This document shows positions 7,107 to 37,255 of a stretch of 37,255 nucleotides of DNA, piece after piece. Numbering within the stretch: position 1 is the stretch's first letter; each line of letters begins with the position of its first letter. The DNA is from Paraphysomonas bandaiensis (lineage: Eukaryota > Protista > Chrysophyceae): NCBI GenBank assembly GCA_965644295.1, contig CBFFRP010000304.1, positions 1-37,255 on the forward strand, read 5' to 3'. A model generated the notes under the pieces. The model ran no database searches. It saw only the letters and a program-made list of their open reading frames with translations, and was not told the origin of the DNA. A program made the position numbers and the translations under genes.

Positions 7107-7531
7107 GAAACGACGGTAATCAGGCACAAAAGTCCTATGGTCTATCCCATTTTAAGTACTTCTTGCAGACCTAAACACAACTTCATTGAATTATGAAACT
7201 TTGAAACCGGAGGACATAACTGTCGAACTGTTCCAGTTCTTTGGCGGATATCTTTCGAGGTGAAACTGCAGCGTTCGAATATCTGATCGGCGTGGATCAT
7301 ACCATTGTCATTGCTGGGAAAGCATTGGCAAACTACACCAATCCTCACCACAAAACATATCCTCCGAGATTGGTGTTTGACGACCGCAACCGCTCACTTG
7401 TATCGACCTTTATGAACAATTTATTTGTACTCTCCTATTCGGAATTTACACCGACCGGCAATCTATATCATTTCAAACTAACGGTTTTCGCTGTAATGAT
7501 TATGCACGTGGAGAGCTTCTGTGGATTGTAA
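7107..7531 (+). pseudogene. Internally deleted, diverged Crypton-like tyrosine recombinase remnant
   Basis: ~7190-7256 translates YETLKPEDITVELFQFFGGYL (cf. YKELIDSDINVELFQCFGGFL in the intact YR). It is joined directly to FRGETAAFEYLIGVDHTIVIAGKALANYTNPHHKTYPP (cf. FSGECSIFEYIMGLDVTIAVGGKILSGYSNPRNKIYPP). In-frame stop at ~7172; catalytic core missing. Confidence 0.85.
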
Positions 7532-8480: not shown

Positions 8481-9160
8481 GCAAATGAATTTCCCACTGT
8501 TATAGCGGGGGTTATCAAAACCGCATACTTTACACCCCAGATATCATGAATATTTTCAATGGTGTCTCTCATCTCCATACCCATTCCTTGTTTGTACAAC
8601 AAAATATGAGTGATATCTACACCCTCTTGCTGTAGAAGAGCTTCCACTTTTCTAGCTCTTTTTTGCTGCAATATACAGCAAATACATTTTTTCCCTCTCT
8701 TATAAATTTCACCAATAATTCTCTAGCCGAGCCCGCGTTTTTGATTTTGTAGGCCGTATTATTTTTAGGAACAATTGTGTTGCGAATGTATGACACATGA
8801 AACGTACGGTTGGAATTCACATCACGTACAAAATCGATAGTTCGTTGAGAGATAAATGCGTCCGCCAAACCAACTTTTTCTGCAGATTGTATTATCTCTT
8901 GGAGGTGAAGAAATATTTGTGTGTGACAACGCATTGCTGTACTGTTGAATGGTGCAAGAATTTCCTCAATCTCGTCGAGTATATTATCTGTATTTAGATT
9001 TTGTTTTCAACACCGATTCCAGCTGAATCACCATGGTATCTGTGTCAGAAATTGAACTATCTTTAAAGTTCATCAAGTAGTGGTCCATTCCAGCTTCGCG
9101 AGCAGCATGGTACGTAAACAGTCGGCGTGGTGCTATTTGTAGTATTGACTTTTTGTCGGT
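8478..9160 (-). pseudogene. UL9/origin-binding-protein-like SF2 helicase fragment, frameshifted (viral type)
   Basis: Across two frameshifts (~8990, ~8660): SILQIAPRRLFT (motif Ia), VIQLESVLK (Ib), ILDEIEEILAPF (II), VGLADAFISQRTIDF (III), KNVFAVYCS (IV), ITPAITVGNSF (V). Walker A and motif VI absent. Confidence 0.75.
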
Positions 9161-9793
9161 ACACACAAGAAGGACGAAGGGCAGACGGACGCTCGTGCCG
9201 CTTAGGCATTCTTCCTGGGCCAGAAAGGCCCTCCTATCGTAATAAAACATTCGTTTTATTACTCTTCCTTTCCACTCTATCTATAAATATAATATAATAA
9301 TTATCTTATATATAATAATATTAATAATACTATACTTTAAATAATAATATTTTTAAGTTATTCACTTTATACACCCACAAAGTAACACAAATAACAACAT
9401 GGATGAAATGGATAATATTTTATAAGATAATAAAAAAATAAAACAAATTTTGGAAATTAGAAAATCCACCCAATCTATCCAGCATAAAAAAACTATACTT
9501 AAAATATAATTGGCATTATGGCTTTCTGGCATTTTATGGCTTTTATGAAAATTAGAAAAAGTTATAAAATAAAAGTTATTATATATATAGTTTCTGTTAT
9601 AAAAGCCAGTGCCATAACAACGCCAGTGGTAACGGTGATGGTGATGTAACGGTGTTGGTGTCAGTGTTGGCATTGGTGTTGTAAAGGAAATGAAAAGAAG
9701 ATAAAACAAAATACACGCAACGAACAATATACAAAATAGTTTTAAAATATCGGCTTCTTTCTTTAAAGTATGATAAAGAAATGCTTGAACTTA

Positions 9794-10555
9794 TCATTCA
9801 GTTGTTGAATCTAAACTCCATGTCTCACCTGTTAATCTAAAATTGATAGTATTAAACATAATATAACCTACTGAGGCAATAACAATTCTTATAATTGAAT
9901 ATCTTTTAGTTGTTGTGACTGCTTCAGTAAATAAAGTTGAATCTTGAGTACCTGGAAATGCTACATCATCTATATATGAAAAGTTTATTCCATATATATA
10001 TATATAGCATGCTTTCATTGTTCTCTCTTGTCCTGTGCTTCTTTCTTGAGTTGATATAGATGTTAAACGAATTTTTATTTGAACCCATTCACCATCTATT
10101 GATTGAGATGTATCATATGTAGTTGAAAAATAATAATCTGTTCCATTACTACCAATGTAATTACCTGTTGTACCGTCATAAGCTTCACCAGAAGGCATAG
10201 CATAAAAAACACCATCTCTACAATTGTCAATGCCATTAGGACCACTATTATATCTATTATTTCCCCAGAACGCATCATCACTATCATCAAATAATAAATT
10301 ACATGAATTTAAAGGATCGGCTGTTCTATATCTACCATATGAAGTACAAATTAAGTTATAATTTGCATCACTTCCACCAGAATAAGTTTTAGTTATACGT
10401 GTGTCAAAAACATCATGGCCATTAAAAGCAGTTGGGAGACCTGTAAATGATGTAGGAAAAGTAACATTTGTTTGATATTGTGTGTTTGTATTACCTTGAA
10501 TGACATTATATTTGTTAATGTGATTAGCAATATTAATAATAGAACTTAATGACAT
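9794..10555 (-). CDS. Virus-like protein with discoidin/F5-8 type C-like beta-sandwich; probably decaying
   Basis: AT-rich, intronless; pattern LFDD..FW..GNYIG..DGEWVQIK..YSIIRIVI. The expected GSNDG segment appears replaced by a (TA)n slip (YIYIY). Confidence 0.5.
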   Translation of the reverse strand: MSLSSIINIANHINKYNVIQGNTNTQYQTNVTFPTSFTGLPTAFNGHDVFDTRITKTYSGGSDANYNLICTSYGRYRTADPLNSCNLLFDDSDDAFWGNNRYNSGPNGIDNCRDGVFYAMPSGEAYDGTTGNYIGSNGTDYYFSTTYDTSQSIDGEWVQIKIRLTSISTQERSTGQERTMKACYIYIYGINFSYIDDVAFPGTQDSTLFTEAVTTTKRYSIIRIVIASVGYIMFNTINFRLTGETWSLDSTTE

Positions 10556-10629
10556 ATATATATATTGATGTTATAGAATAATTTGTTATTTTTATATTAA
10601 ATAATTATATAGTATAAATATATATAATC

Positions 10630-10900
10630 ATGAGTGTTTACCCAAAACCGAAAAGATCAAATACAGTTTTTAATGCATTAGACTATACAAATCCAAAAGA
10701 TAGTGTAGTTGATATAGATTTAACAGGATATATTCAAAAGAGTGGTGACATAATGAGTGGAACTCTAGTTTTACCATCATTAAATTTATATGGAGAAGGA
10801 ACAGTTAAGTTTAATGATGATTCAATACAAACAACAGCAATGACAGATGATTTAAAGACATATATTGAAAATACGAAAACAAAAGCTACTAATATTGACG
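10630..10900 (+). pseudogene. Truncated viral fibre-like protein (Polinton-like virus/virophage/phage style)
   Basis: MSVYPKPK..FNALDY start, GYIQKSGDIMSGTL (YVxKxGDTMTG-like fibre motif) and KFNDDSIQTTA (FxDGTxQTTA-like). Cut at 10900 by a dispersed repeat. Confidence 0.55.
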
Positions 10901-11001
10901 TTGGTACACGGGTGGGTGGGTAGTAGAATCAGTGCTATATCTCGGTGTTTTAGGTGGGGCACCAGCCAGCCTACACTATGGCCACGCCCTAGGATGGGGC
11001 A
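10900..11001. repeat. Dispersed ~100-bp GC-rich repeat, copy 1
   Basis: Near-identical (few substitutions) to the reverse complement of 22585-22687. Confidence 0.9.
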
Positions 11002-12483: not shown

Positions 12484-13029
12484 CTTATATACAGTGATAT
12501 TAACTAAGTGATGTCGTTCCTTGTGGTTGTTGGCTGATAGCTATGGGAAAAGAAGGTGCTGAGGGGAGGTATGCACCTTAGTTTTCGGGAATAAATTGAA
12601 GCAAATATACTCGATATTACTGATGTAAAACTACGGCTGGAATACAGATAATTATTGTCTCAATACTAGAGGCATTTTGGAACAAAAATATACAGAGGAC
12701 GCTGATACGGATTCACATTTTTTCAGTAACATTTTTAGTAATATGTTAGAGTTTTTTTTGGCACGTGGTTGTGAAAAACAGTCATTTTAGTGCCTCTCAT
12801 TGACATGACAAGTGGACTTTTTCTGTAAAATGTGGAAGGTACCGTACTCAAGCCCGCACCATAATGGTGTGGAACTATATAAGTGGTGATGATGAGTGAC
12901 CAGTGGTATGTATGGTGTTGCTGGTGAGTAATAGATCCAGGGAGGTGGGTGTTGAAGGAGGAGCTCTCTCATCACAGCATGGTATCATACATACAGAACA
13001 TAATAACAGCGAGAACATATCATAGTAGC

Positions 13030-15187
13030 ATGGAATCAACTACCACGGAATCAACTACCACGGAATCAACTACCACGGAATCAACTACCACGGAATCAAC
13101 TACCACGGAATCAACTACCACAGGGGGCATTAGAAAAGTCGGTGATGGGGAAACCAAAAATCGTAACTCCTCTGCGTTAGCTCAGTTTGCGAAGTACTTG
13201 GAGATGCGGTTCGACGGGAAGAAGAGGTATAAGGAACTCATAGACAGTGATATAAATGTAGAACTATTTCAATGTTTCGGTGGCTTTTTGATCGATCACG
13301 CCGTCCATGGAACAACGAAGAAGCCTTTGACCCTAGGTACTGCTTGGCAGTATTTGTCAGACACGAAGACTGCGCTGACGAAGCGATTTAAAAGAAATGA
13401 GTTATTAAGCAGCTCCAATGAGCTGTGGTACAAAGATGTGAGAGCGGCAGTATCAAAGCATATTATCAAGCGGTGTATCGCACAAGGAGTGCGTATATCA
13501 GAGAAAACAAGTCCAGTGGGGAAAGAACTAATGAAGCGCATAGGTGAATACATTATACATCGGGCATCTGATTTCTCCGGTAAGTGGACATACTTCACAT
13601 ATCTATGATTTACTGTATGCTAATAAACTTTATTTAGAAGTGAAGAAGTATTCATTGTACAATCTCTATTTGGTTTTCACGTTTGCTGCTGTTGGTCGGG
13701 TGTCTGAAGCAATGTTTGCTTCGTATAATAATGCAATGTGGCACTGCGATGGATACTTAACGTTTGATTGGACAGAATTGAAGGTGGCTTCTATCAAAAC
13801 AATGAACTTTTTTCCCGACTACTCTTGTCTAGAGACTTGTGTTTTCTTCGCTTATTCAATGTACTGGATGTCCTGTACTGCAGCAGATCTCAACGGTGAC
13901 TTCGTCTTTCCAGATCTAGCATTGACTACATCAAGCGCTAGTCAATTTGTTTCTAAGCTACTAAAACAAATGATCGGGAAGGTACCTGGAGTTACAAAGG
14001 AAACAACAGGCAAGGGTCTTAGAGTCGGGGCTGCAACTGACATAGCCAGTAGTCAGTCAGGCGGCATCTTCCATGCGATTATGCGTGGAGGATGGGACTT
14101 CTCCGGAGAGTGCAGCATTTTTGAGTATATCATGGGACTAGATGTCACTATTGCTGTGGGTGGAAAAATTTTAAGTGGCTACTCTAATCCCAGGAATAAG
14201 ATATATCCACCCGAGTGTGTATTTATCAACAATGGAAACCGAGAACAAGTGATGGCGTTAATCGAAACATGTTATCCACTCACTTACCCAGAATTTGGGG
14301 TTGATGGCTGTCTATTTCAATTTAAACTCTCTGTGTTTGCTACATTCCTTATGAGGTTACCATCATTTGTTTCTAAATACACGGCACAACATGCAGTGGT
14401 TTGTAAATTCAAGCACAACATGATGCGCCACCATTTCACTTGGAATGACATAATGCAATGGAGTGCTGCGATTGAGGAGGAATGGCTTCGCCTTAATTTT
14501 GTAGACACAAGAAATGTAGACGAAATTTACCAGGAGAATCGCATTCTTCGAGACCAAATACAACAGCTTCATAGAAAGTGTGACACCCAAACTATTGCAA
14601 TAGCTGATCTGCACAAGAAATTAGACACTGCTGTGGCTGATATTCTAGAAGGCTTGAAAAATATTCCAACGGATACCACTATACCAACTTCAGAGACTGT
14701 ATCACGGATACCTACATCGCCTACAGTCTTGCCTCCGATTACTGAAGGACCTTCCAAAGGTCCATCCACTACTACGACAAATGTTTTTCAATACATGAGA
14801 GTTAACATGCAGCGCATGCCCCATATATCCTTCATTCAATATAAAACTCTCGAAAAATTATGCTTATCAACAGTTATTATTGACTATTTTGATTATGAAT
14901 TACATGAAATTGTAGGAAAGAGATACCCTATGGTAGACAACGTCAACAAACAGAAAAAACTAAATCGAGTATTGACTAAAGGACTCGGCCTATTGTACGA
15001 TGACGAGAAACGTTTTCTTGATGAGCCGAAACCCTGTATGGCAAGTCAGTCTACTTCGTACAGAGAATGGAAGAGTAATTTAAAATGCATAGCTGAAAAG
15101 GTTGAATTGCGTGTTATTGTTGATTTATTTGGTCAGGAAAATTACGACAAGTTTCACCCCAAAAAAAAGCCTCTAAGAAATACATAA
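13030..15187 (+). CDS. Crypton-like tyrosine recombinase, 2 exons
   Basis: Intron 13580-13637 (GTAAGT..TGCTAAT..TTTAG) fuses the two ORFs in frame (..SDFS|EVKKY..). Catalytic motifs GRVSE (Arg), ELKV (candidate Lys), GKGLRVGAA (H/K-x-x-R), RGGW (Trp) and IFEYI (Tyr). No RT, so Crypton rather than DIRS. Confidence 0.85.
13032..13121 (+). repeat. Perfect 15-bp x6 coding tandem repeat (ESTTT)6
   Basis: GGAATCAACTACCAC repeated six times with no substitutions at the YR N-terminus. Confidence 0.97.
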
Positions 15188-15264
15188 ACAGTATATATGA
15201 TGCAATGAGTGCACGAAGGGACAGTGATGGTAACATTATTCCAAGGACAAAGAAAAGGAAACTT

Positions 15265-15814
15265 CAGTCTGATGTTAGTAATCTGTAGAATGCCAATATA
15301 TGTATTCATTTATAACCACTCCATCAACTTTTTATAATGTACCCTTATAATTAATGATTCATTAGTAATTGGAATACATCGTATCATTATTTACAGAGCA
15401 TACAACAGTATAATCAACCATTACAGCGTTCAGCATTTTATTATTCGACACAGTCTGATGTTAGTAATCTGTAGAATGCCTATATGTATTCATTTATAAC
15501 CACTCCATCAACTTTTTATAATGTACCCTTATAATTAATGATTCATTAGTAATTGGAATACATCGTATCATTATTTACAGAGCATACAACAGTATAATCA
15601 ACCATTACAGCGTGCAGCATTTTATTATTCGACACAGTCTGATGTTAGTAATCTGTAGAATGCCTATATGTATTCATTTATAACCACTCCATCAACTTTT
15701 TATACTGTACCCTTATAATTAATGATTCATTAGTAATTGGAATACATCGTATCATTATTTACAGAGCATACAACAGTATAATCAACCATCACAGCGTTCA
15801 GCATTTTATTATTC
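15265..15814. repeat. Tandem repeat A, ~185 bp x3
   Basis: Units start CAGTCTGATGTTAG at 15265, 15451 and 15635; near-identical. Confidence 0.95.
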
Positions 15815-16198
15815 CACACCGTTCAGAATTCTTATCACATACAGCCATACTGCATACCCTTACACAACATGACACATATTCACTGCAAGATGGAACAGGG
15901 GCAGCCGGGCGCTTGTGTCGCTTAGGCATCCCTCTTGCACCGGTAAGTATAAACGTCATTGCGCCTACAACAGCATAATAAACCATCACAGCCTTCAGCA
16001 TTTTATTATTCCACACCGTTCAGAATTCTTATCACATACAGCCATACTGCATACCCTTACACAACATGACACATATTCACTGCAAGATGGTACAGGGGCA
16101 GCCGGGCGCTTGTGTCGCTTAGGCATCCCTCTTGCACCGGTAAGTATAAACGTCATTGCGCCTACAACAGCATAATAAACCATGACAACATTCAGCAT
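15769..16198. repeat. Tandem repeat B, 197 bp x ~2.2
   Basis: TACAACAG.. motif recurs at 15769, 15966 and 16163; intervening sequences near-identical. Confidence 0.95.
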
Positions 16199-16949
16199 CT
16201 CATATACCATCACACAACATAGTGCATGCATGATATACAGCCTTCTATTCCTTCAAATGTACCACTTCTCATCTCTCTGCATACCTGACACTTTAAATAG
16301 GATGATGGGAGCATGATGCTCCCACCTGGAATTCAATCATTGATATCCATATCATATCACTTCATACCATAATATACAGCCCTTCACAGTTCCTCTCCAT
16401 ACAGCCTTATAAACCTCGTCCAGTAACTGCATATCTCATCTCACAGTTTCATGAAATAAGATGGTAGCAACATGTTATCACCTATCATTCAAGCACTCAT
16501 TAACGTGTATCTGCTGCATATGGCTGCCTCGTCATATTACTATATACATATACTCGATGCATGTGATATGATGCACTATGCTATGATGCACTCTGCTGAT
16601 TGGATCACTCGATGGGCGCACTTGCTGTGCGGCCTTTGTGTAAAAACAAGGGTGCGGGATCCCGCACCTGCGGTGCGGGCTAAATAATTTTTCAGGATTA
16701 AGATGAACTTCCCGTCCTCTTACACAGTGTAGATTCGTATTGAATACACACATACAGGCAGAATATACATACGCAGCATCTGCACTATATAATCCTACGT
16801 ATCATATCAACGTATGGAGGTCTAGTAGTGGGGAGCCATATGCATATATGTCTGGTGGTTGCAATCCTATTCACCTCCATTCCAATTCCATATATATATA
16901 TACCTCTATACATTCATTTGACTACTAATACTTATCATAAGAAGTCATC

Positions 16950-18274
16950 ATGAGTGATACAAAAGCAACATTAGAGGCAAGAACTATTCAAGTAGATGAT
17001 AAAGTCTACTCAGCTAAAGCACTGGCTGATGAACATCCTGGTGGTGATTTATTTATTAAAGCATTTGCTGGTCGTGATGCTACTGAAGCATTTATGTCAT
17101 ATCATCGTCGTCGATTCCCTCATGATAAAATGAAACATACGGCTATTGGTAAAGCAGTTTCTATTAAATCAGAGGATGCGGATAAGGATTATATTGAGCT
17201 TTGTGAGATTATCGATAAAGTATTACCAAGAGCGAAATCATTTGCACCAACATCTTATTTTGTTAAGGCATTTACTATTATTGCTATTGCTGTTGGGCTT
17301 GAGGTAAGATAGTATGCTATATTTTTGCTGTGATATCGTATTCATGTCGTATCCAGTTGTACATTCACCTCACCCGAAGCTACAAGTGGTATCTGACTGC
17401 TGTGTTGGGGCTAGTGTATGCTTTTATTGGGCTCAATATTCAGCACGATGCCAATCACGGTGCTATATCTCGCAACCCTAGAGTCAACAGACTTTTGGGC
17501 CTAACTCAAAACTGGATTGGTGGTTCAGCAGTGGATTGGATACACCAACACGTTGTGCAGCACCACGTACACACCAACGACCTGCACCATGACCCAGACA
17601 TTGCGGGTAATACATTCATTCGACTCAATCCGCTGCAGCCTCTGCTCCACTTCCACGTTGTGCAGCACATATACATCTTCCTTCTAATCTGTGGCTTTGG
17701 CTTCTCCGTTGTCTTCACGTCAATGCAACACCTTTACACTGGCATGCACAAGAGTAGAATGTCTGAGATGTTGGCGGGGTACAGAGTGCGGGAGTTTCTG
17801 GCAACATTTCCTTTCTTTTTGCGCTGGTTTGTTCTGCCGATTGTGCAGGTGCCCTCTGTCCAGACTGCTCTAAATGTAGCGCCAATGTTTGTTACCGGTG
17901 GGTTCTATCTGGCCTTTTTCTTTGTCATTTCCCACAACTTTGTTGGTGTGCACATGTTCGACAAGACAAAGACAGATAAGAAGAAGGAGTCATTCTTGTA
18001 CAGCCAAGTAGCATCTTCTTGCAATGTGGGAGGGCCTTGGTTGGCCTTTATTAATGGTGGACTTAACTACCAAATTGAGCACCATCTCTTTCCCCGTATA
18101 TCACACACACACTATCCTAAAATAGCCCCCGTTGTTCGTGAATTCTGTCGCAAAAAAGGTATCCCGTATGTGCACTTCCCGACTATTTCTGAGAACATGG
18201 CCTCTTGTGTGAACCACCTCTACAAGTTTGGCAATGACAAGAACCCCTACCCCTCCGTCAAAGCGTGGAAGTAA
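16950..18274 (+). CDS. Front-end fatty acid desaturase (cytochrome b5 fusion; delta-4/5/6 type), 2 exons
   Basis: HPGG haem motif, His boxes HDANH, HVVQHH and QIEHH; intron 17304-17356. Confidence 0.93.
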
Positions 18275-33390: not shown

Positions 33391-33506
33391 ATGTATGTAT
33401 GTATGTATGTATGTATGTATGTATGTATGTATGTATGTATGTATGTATGTATGTATGTATGTATGTATGTATGTATGTATGTATGTATGTATGTATGTAT
33501 GTATGT
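33391..33506. repeat. (TATG)n microsatellite
   Basis: Pure tetranucleotide run of ~29 units. Confidence 0.98.
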
Positions 33507-33856
33507 AGGAAGAAAGAATATGTTGTATTAATCAATCATATTCCCTCCTCTTGAAACCCATTGATTTGATTTGTTAAAGAACTCCACATCTTTCAGTTTA
33601 TATTCTTCAAGATATACATATAAAAAAACTACTCATATCTTACACATACAGCAGCAGGAATTCCTATAGTCTCATAGTATATGTACAGCAGTGTGTATAC
33701 TGCTGTAGATGATCATCCAGATATCTCATACATAGCTGCCTAATATAACACGCATACAACACTCTAAGTCCCCATATATCCATATATCACTATTGTTCTA
33801 CACACATTCCAAACATCTCTCTACCTATTAATCACTCATTCTATATAGAATTCATT

Positions 33857-36729: not shown

Positions 36730-37255
36730 GTATGTATGTATGTATGTATGTATGTATGTATGTATGTATGTATGTATGTATGTATGTATGTATGTATGTA
36801 TGTATGTATGTATGTATGTATGTATGTATGTATGTATGTATGTATGTATGTATGTATGTATGTATGTATGTATGTATGTATGTATGTATGTATGTATGTA
36901 TGTATGTATGTATGTATGTATGTATGTATGTATGTATGTATGTATGTATGTATGTATGTATGTATGTATGTATGTATGTATGTATGTATGTATGTATGTA
37001 TGTATGTATGTATGTATGTATGTATGTATGTATGTATGTATGTATGTATGTATGTATGTATGTATGTATGTATGTATGTATGTATGTATGTATGTATGTA
37101 TGTATGTATGTATGTATGTATGTATGTATGTATGTATGTATGTATGTATGTATGTATGTATGTATGTATGTATGTATGTATGTATGTATGTATGTATGTA
37201 TGTATGTATGTATGTATGTATGTATGTATGTATGTATGTATGTATGTATGTATGT
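36730..37255. repeat. (TATG)n microsatellite running to the window end
   Basis: More than 520 bp of pure repeat. Confidence 0.98.

Follow-up and report, generated by a model that had tools for sequence, protein, structure and literature searches.

The repeat array at 15265-16198 is, by its sequence and its recurrence in the genome, part of a Crypton-type tyrosine-recombinase (YR) DNA transposon and not a local feature of a single locus. It was analysed within a 37,255-nucleotide stretch of DNA from Paraphysomonas bandaiensis (hereafter, the window) and against the genome from which this stretch derives. Our preferred reading, which we regard as probable, is that the array is the 3' end of the transposon, where a tail once present in single copy was duplicated by three local events and subsequently spread.

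The layout of the array was recovered by independent repeat searches. TRF reported a 184-bp period repeated 3.0 times at 15265-15819 (98% matches) and a 197-bp period repeated 2.2 times at 15769-16198 (96% matches); the two overlap by a common motif, R, and a separate repeat search returned the same two unit families. A degenerate 46-mer representing R matched at 15401, 15585, 15769 and 15966 with 0-1 mismatches and had no match in 100 dinucleotide shuffles. The fifth copy, at 16163, is identical to the fourth (R4) at 37 of 47 positions. These data reproduce the A-R-A-R-A-R-B-R-B-R' order of the original prediction. R terminates every unit, both in the 184-bp A series (three units) and in the 197-bp B series (2.2 units). 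The view that the A and B segments are unrelated also holds, as comparing the units with R left out revealed no similarity between them. The coordinates of the array and of the element that carries it are collected in Table 1.

Table 1. Features of the Crypton-type element and its internal repeat array (window coordinates).
Feature	Position	Strand	Remarks
Crypton-type transposon, 3,876 bp	12818-16693	+	homology bounds; one YR gene and 1.4-kb non-coding 3' region
Left TTTTC(-like) terminal direct repeat	12818-12823	+	first 1-2 bases vary between insertions
YR gene	12949-15288	+	58-nt GT-AG intron at 13580-13637
A unit 1, 186 bp	15265-15450	+	last 8 YR codons and stop, 3' flank, R1, GACA
R1	15401-15446	+	within A unit 1
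A unit 2, 184 bp	15451-15634	+	with R2 (15585-15630)
A unit 3	15635-15814	+	with R3 (15769-15814); ancestral unit
B unit 1, 151 bp	15815-15965	+	GC-rich core 15885-15947
R4	15966-16011	+	Rb (5')/Ra (3') chimera; B-duplication joint
B unit 2	16012-16162	+	core 16082-16144
R5	16163-16198	+	ancestral Rb paralogue (R' in the original prediction)
3' tail	16199-16693	+	19-bp palindrome at 16306-16324
Subterminal GGTGCGGG/CCCGCACC palindromes	16651-16679	+	mirror CCCGCACC at 12853-12860
Right TTTTTC terminal direct repeat	16688-16693	+	invariant, element-derived

R is not confined to this one locus: the array of three A and two B units (A3-B2) recurs elsewhere in the genome. Assemblies often go wrong over tandem repeats; nevertheless, the chance that this array is an assembly artefact is very small, because the same 966 bp (15265-16230) recur at ~100% identity and with identical structure on different contigs, at 29 loci or more. 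The units are told apart by substitutions, and a variant with two A units (A2) is limited to a few copies. The genome contains 67 matches to the ORF in the B unit which, at two B units each, correspond to ~33-34 elements. We count ~15 full-length (autonomous) and ~19 deleted copies, all at near-100% identity. A 2.54-kb derivative lacking 13619-14922 accounts for at least 14 copies, and other deletion forms are rarer.

A search with a 12-kb query defined the ends of the element directly. Homology starts at 12818/12819 and stops at 16693 in at least 14 full-length copies at ~100% identity, and the flanks around ~20-21 excised copies are unrelated, with ends that always read nTTTTC on the left and TTTTTC on the right. 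Variation in the first bases of the left repeat (Table 1) indicates that the left copy is target-derived. No empty-site allele was found for the insertion in the window. The element has a single gene (742-765 aa) and no RT, LTR or TIR; apart from overlaps, it contains no other ORF of 100 aa or more, and in place of long terminal repeats it has short subterminal palindromes only. Its length of 3,861 or 3,876 bp reflects the number of 15-bp coding repeats. This repeat (STTTE units) lies at 13032-13121, near the YR N-terminus, and varies from 2 to 7 units among P0001, P0002, P0006 (JGI proteins P0001 and P0006 are described below) and the window. Cryptons are characterized by a lone YR gene, the lack of RT, TIR and LTR, short terminal direct repeats and non-autonomous derivatives (PMC3212892; PMC13465315). 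Terminal direct repeats of 4-6 bp without TIR or LTR, the Crypton criterion, were found in 21 copies. The combination of one YR gene, no RT, TIR or LTR, 5-6-bp terminal repeats and non-autonomous derivatives therefore assigns the family to the Cryptons.

A few copies have flanks in common. A 1.53-kb derivative without any array occurs at two places, each of which shares one flank with a third copy, and independent transposition of this form is therefore not proven. The flanks of L053 (C58:213354-214884), L054 (C259:4318-5848) and L034 (C433:27154-29693) are common pairwise, in the arrangement X-element-Z, W-element-Y and X-element-Y. C58 carries a deleted copy that faces a full one across 46 bp, and the outer flank of both is the same sequence in inverted orientation. 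These arrangements point to ectopic exchange among copies at dispersed sites, to an inverted duplication, or to an effect of haplotigs or of the assembly.

The YR gene is assembled from ORFs 12949-13608 and 13544-15187, which are joined by the 58-nt intron; two JGI proteins that are 99% identical to the window (P0001 and P0006; 742 and 765 aa) read across it. These spliced proteins end ...QSDVSNL, and the C-terminal sequence continues to ...KKRKLQSDVSNL. In intact copies the stop is the TAG at 15286-15288, inside A unit 1: the last 8 codons plus TAG (15265-15288) are the first 24 nt of that unit. As the YR stop lies 24 nt into the first A unit, the array consists of the last 8 codons of the gene and its 3' flank. 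Use of this TAG requires a run of nine A residues (A9); the window copy has eight (A8, 15161-15168) and stops early, at 15185-15187. Both run lengths are present among the copies, and the long frame is found in 5 of the 15 full-length copies. The A9 form yields the full YR with a KKRK-containing tail, and the A8 form (~10 of 15 full-length copies) a product 34 aa shorter. This homopolymer polymorphism could be real decay or sequencing error.

Conserved residues and the modelled fold together identify the product of the element gene as a tyrosine recombinase. An exhaustive HMMER search collected 554 relatives, and alignment of 40-60 of them left R236, K264, R344, R365, W368 and Y379 (P0006 numbering) near-invariant; the conserved R, K, R, R-G-x-W and Y positions are the tyrosine-recombinase catalytic set. 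The alignment-based model reached a pLDDT of 92.7, against 36 for a single-sequence prediction. Its best structural match was Flp (Z 13.2, rmsd 3.6 Å, 203 residues aligned), followed by Ndc10 (Z 12.7), XerH (12.3), Cre (10.8) and lambda Int (10.0), so that all of the best structural matches are tyrosine recombinases or their derivatives. The ESM-Atlas neighbours were oomycete CB-domain proteins, NDC10_II, Phage_integrase and DUF3504. Other searches by sequence returned little: Pfam had no match for the YR protein, Phage_integrase was matched weakly by 2 of 40 relatives, a word search for homologues found the protein itself only, a profile search against PDB gave a best E of about 0.4 (to Cre), and scans of metagenomes had no match.

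The ancestral form of the array can be read directly from L041-L046, diverged sister families within this genome at 66-90% identity. Each part of the region is single there: the YR C-terminus with its stop is followed by A, Ra, a spacer of ~55 nt, B, Rb and the tail. Alignment of the R copies resolved two conserved types, Ra, which lies behind A and has an end of the ...GCGTTCAGCATTTTAT type, and Rb, which lies behind B and has an end of the ...CCATTCAGCATCTCAT type. The two are alike over about 36-40 bp, at only about 80%. Because the older sister families hold a single A-Ra-spacer-B-Rb, R is best described as two old paralogues, which on this alignment form an old pair of direct repeats. This changes the interpretation of the distal copy, which had been taken as the decayed end of a polarised array: the fifth copy is the conserved ancestral Rb, found as such in four sister families. 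The spacer between Ra and B is missing from the window family, and its loss explains the last ~10 nt of the R copies there as a spacer remnant. The motif predicted at ~46 bp is therefore confirmed, with its extent shortened by that remnant on the evidence of the sister families.

Conservation of R across relatives is uneven. L042 has lost most of Ra, and L043 most of Rb. In L044, a distant non-autonomous relative, Ra (89%) and Rb (83%) are among the best-kept blocks, and in L057, a ~1-kb MITE-like relative, 40 bp of the left end are joined directly to R-B-R-tail. The preservation of R in these last two suggests that it may be under constraint rather than neutral.

We propose the following route from the single-copy tail to the present array. 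The ancestral tail comprised A (the last 8 YR codons and 3' flank), Ra, the ~55-nt spacer, B, Rb and the tail. In a master copy, deletion of the spacer would have fused Ra to B. A second event would have been a tandem duplication of A and Ra, the joint of which shows no more than 1-2 nt of homology, with a later increase to three copies. In a third, unequal homologous exchange between Ra and Rb, or replication slippage, would have duplicated B together with one R, leaving R4 as a chimera. Transposition would then have carried the finished A3-B2 array to about 34 loci.

The joints of the two duplications are preserved. R4 is like R5, and not R3, at diagnostic positions 9 and 15 only, and like R3, and not R5, at nine diagnostic positions, all of them from 22 onward; its flanks are the end of B on the left and the start of B on the right. 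Joints at equivalent positions of two flanking direct repeats, as seen here for Ra and Rb, are what unequal homologous exchange or slippage between them leaves behind. The A-duplication joint (...TTCGACA followed by CAGTCTG...) connects sequence just past Ra to the eighth-last YR codon, with homology of at most 1-2 nt, and lies outside R. Duplication of A between R copies, as originally envisaged, is thus not what the joint records. A unit 3 keeps sister-family bases at two sites at which units 1 and 2 have derived ones in common, which marks unit 3 as the original. Tandem duplication between direct repeats, by unequal crossing-over or slippage, is common inside transposons and 3' UTRs. The B duplication has the same form, R-B-R' becoming R-B-R(chimera)-B-R' with the joint inside the repeat; it does not differ in principle, and the repeats are here short (~40 bp) and only ~80% alike.

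Both duplications, like the loss of the spacer, predate the recent burst of copies. Three A units at 184-bp spacing and two B units at 197-bp spacing are found in nearly all of 46 loci, and at least 33 copies carry A3-B2 at about 100% identity. The A2 state arose in one copy by unit loss through exchange, and in two others by an unrelated 291-bp deletion. A dynamic array driven by the recombinase was part of the original prediction; ~33 copies with A3-B2 and one unit lost by exchange speak against it. We infer that the multiplication itself is a neutral passenger without a function of its own, and that the single-copy A-Ra-B-Rb block serves the YR gene as its 3' UTR or as its downstream region. 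This block may hold cis-acting protein-binding sites, given that most non-autonomous derivatives keep it.

R had been proposed as a recombination site that drives cassette duplication. Part of this idea is borne out, since the B joint falls inside R homology, in R4, and a YR gene lies directly upstream; the part that fails is that R lacks the features of a YR site. Sites of the lox, FRT or att type have inverted arms around a 6-8-bp shared core. No inverted arms of 6 nt or more were found in R1, R3 or R5, and R4 has one AT-rich 8-mer only. Cryptons are expected to move by site-specific recombination, with a circle as intermediate. The circle junction rebuilt from the two ends of the element has a 10-bp inverted repeat (GGTGCGGGCT / AGCCCGCACC) around a TTTTTC core, with further GGTGCGGG palindromes, and R in direct orientation bears no resemblance to it. 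Variation of cassette number between copies, as in integrons, is likewise not a property of the A3-B2 array. With no dyad in R and no likeness to the terminal site, the B exchange looks homology-driven and not YR site-specific. R would accordingly be a recombination point only as the homology at which B was duplicated.

A different role for the recombinase was also considered, in which R, either alone or together with the B core, acts as an arm-type accessory or secondary YR site and the duplications were selected or made by the recombinase. The adjacent YR gene, the persistence of the block in most non-autonomous derivatives and the conservation of Ra and Rb in the distant L044 are consistent with such a site. 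At the R/B joint there is also a heptamer, CCACACC, similar to the CCGCACC motifs of the termini, and the joint matches the left subterminal region in inverted orientation with a score that none of 500 shuffles attained. This heptamer is missing in the sister families, however, which read ACACACC there; R has neither a dyad nor a TTTTC core and is unlike the circle junction in direct orientation; one or other R is largely lost in L042 and L043; the 1.53-kb derivative occurs without the array at two places; and the A joint lies outside R. We therefore judge an accessory site unlikely. As candidate sites in their own right, the CC[GA]CACC heptamers were rejected: they are 9-fold enriched in the element, and the internal ones are not conserved in sister families. 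In the lambda family, arm-type sites build the intasome. Like those sites, R is present as several motif copies in the element, beside the YR gene and away from the crossover. Lambda arm sites are, however, ~10 bp against 46 bp for R, and the sister families have two R copies only, some having lost one; for R an arm-type role is putative.

The original prediction offered as an alternative that R is the 3' end of an intron in a minus-strand gene running through the array, with B as a duplicated exon. On the minus strand R does read like a branch site, pyrimidine tract and AG, and B contains a 53-codon minus ORF that starts upstream of MPKRHKRP and is open in several sister copies; a 9-nt deletion in L044 keeps its frame. 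The frame is, however, broken by 7-nt and 8-nt indels (L056 and L057) and by a 1-nt deletion (L045), and the families become unalignable past ...PSC. Relative to the most distant homologue, 1 synonymous and 6 non-synonymous changes are seen which, with a long stretch of identical bases, point to conservation of B at the level of DNA and not of protein. Outside 13296-13598 the element has no minus-strand ORF of 100 aa or more, and the only recorded proteins are plus-strand YR products. The frameshifts in sister copies, the lack of a long minus ORF and the excess of non-synonymous changes make a minus-strand gene very improbable.

Other readings of the 3' region were examined and set aside. A mini-intron on the plus strand (GTAAGT...ACAG at the B/R joint) was rejected, its donor being GGAAGT, GAAAGT or GTAATT in four sister families. 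Rfam had no match at E <= 1 over 12700-16800, and a tRNA scan found none. Folding of the B and R unit as RNA gave z-scores of +1.28 and +1.34 for the two strands, no better than shuffles, and RNAalifold of the B core returned a short stem with a single compensatory change only. The suggestion that the 3' region is an old degenerate array (ATACAGCC and CTGCATA motifs) rested on weak matches (E >= 0.1) and was dropped, as was a relationship of the B core to the termini of the element itself, which scored at the shuffle mean.

The B core does have a relative elsewhere. It matches 9165-9228 of the window at 79% over 52 nt (82% over 57 nt for the B core of L042), and L058 at 90% over 40 nt. A repeat tip that starts sharply at 9160 is found at no fewer than 58 places in the genome, and by its distribution the stretch at 9160 is the outermost tip of a repeat, not part of a second Crypton. 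Three contigs have such repeats as opposed pairs, with separations of 19.6, 21.7 and 22.2 kb, and each interval contains the ORFs of 9794-10923 plus a stand-alone rve integrase of ~350 aa. The segment at 9160-10896 belongs to an element of 20-22 kb, here truncated, whose TIRs measure at least 540 bp and whose architecture is Polinton-like; partner copies lie in G000 at C297:1046164-1065790, C298:195336-217566 and C461:15476-37187, and C370:43594-44583 holds two facing TIRs only, in MITE-like form. The 20-22-kb element is putatively Polinton-like, by architecture only. PHROGs returned nothing for the ORFs beside the TIR tip, which we therefore do not call viral, and Pfam nothing for the other ORFs of the element. 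It is the outermost ~55-75 nt of its TIR that match the Crypton B core. Separately, a second Crypton-type YR, strongly diverged, is represented by an isolated fragment at 7241-7531; it is unique in the genome and has 42-44% aa identity to the 3,876-bp Crypton family.

This match raises the question of a shared function. The B core could be a working cis signal held in common with the TIR tips of the 20-22-kb rve element, by which the Crypton borrows integrase, replication or packaging, and the greater efficacy of a doubled signal would then account for the duplication of the R-flanked B. The 79-90% identity of the B core over 40-57 nt to the outermost TIR tip fits such a signal, as do the sharp start of the tip at 9160 in 58 or more places and the facing pairs, 19.6-22.2 kb apart, that enclose the ~350-aa rve ORF. 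The match spans only ~55 nt, though, and could be an old captured fragment; the B core lies 550-750 bp inside the Crypton, not at its end, and in close sister families is about as conserved as neighbouring sequence. We consider a shared signal quite unlikely, and the resemblance stands as an unexplained link between two classes of mobile element.

Duplication of the Crypton's own tail remains our preferred reading, and the element that carries it is otherwise unremarkable, a very young representative of an established class of transposons, its array being ordinary transposon anatomy. Crypton DNA transposons reportedly go back to work by Goodwin in 2003. The window family shares with them the single YR gene, the lack of RT, TIR and LTR, the 5-6-bp terminal repeats with a variable target-side copy, and the non-autonomous deletion derivatives. 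Known Cryptons include CryptonS of oomycetes and diatoms (Kojima & Jurka 2011, PMC3212892). The host here appears to be a stramenopile too, and membership in this subgroup is putative; CryptonS elements commonly have TATGG ends, in contrast to TTTTC in the window family. Most Cryptons are low-copy, whereas this family has an unusually high and young copy number (~34). Its 1.4-kb non-coding tail with internal tandem duplications is not mentioned in two papers on Cryptons that were examined. Ordered A/B repeats near the 3' end of a YR element recall the Ngaro/VIPER YR retroelements, which have split direct repeats in the order A1 ... B1-A2-B2 (PMC13465315). In Ngaro/VIPER the repeats are terminal, occur at both the 5' and the 3' end, and are found in elements that encode an RT; those in the window are internal tandem copies, and their element lacks an RT and has nothing homologous to A or B at its 5' end.

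The window is eukaryotic DNA and also contains microsatellites, GT-AG introns, a glycosyltransferase and a kinase. Two of the microsatellites are long and perfect, (GTAT)n with 131 units at 36730-37255 and (ATGT)n with 29 units at 33391-33507, and the contig ends in the former. A ~140-bp repeat at 12573-12710, just left of the Crypton, is 87-94% identical to other copies, with at least 874 first-look candidates in the genome, and appears to be a very abundant MITE-like element. To the right, the ORFs 16950-17312 and 17330-18274 form a cytochrome-b5/fatty-acid (front-end type) desaturase pair. The right end of the Crypton is 257 bp upstream of this pair and in the same orientation, which places the element in the likely promoter of the desaturase gene.

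What appeared to be a recombinase-driven cassette array is thus a duplicated Crypton tail, and the result matters mainly as correct annotation. In the chimeric R4, repeat-mediated duplication is seen in clean form. Cryptons have received little study and mostly have few copies, and the window family is near-100% identical and high-copy. With clear ends and graded natural deletion derivatives, it offers good material for mapping the cis requirements of a eukaryotic YR transposon.
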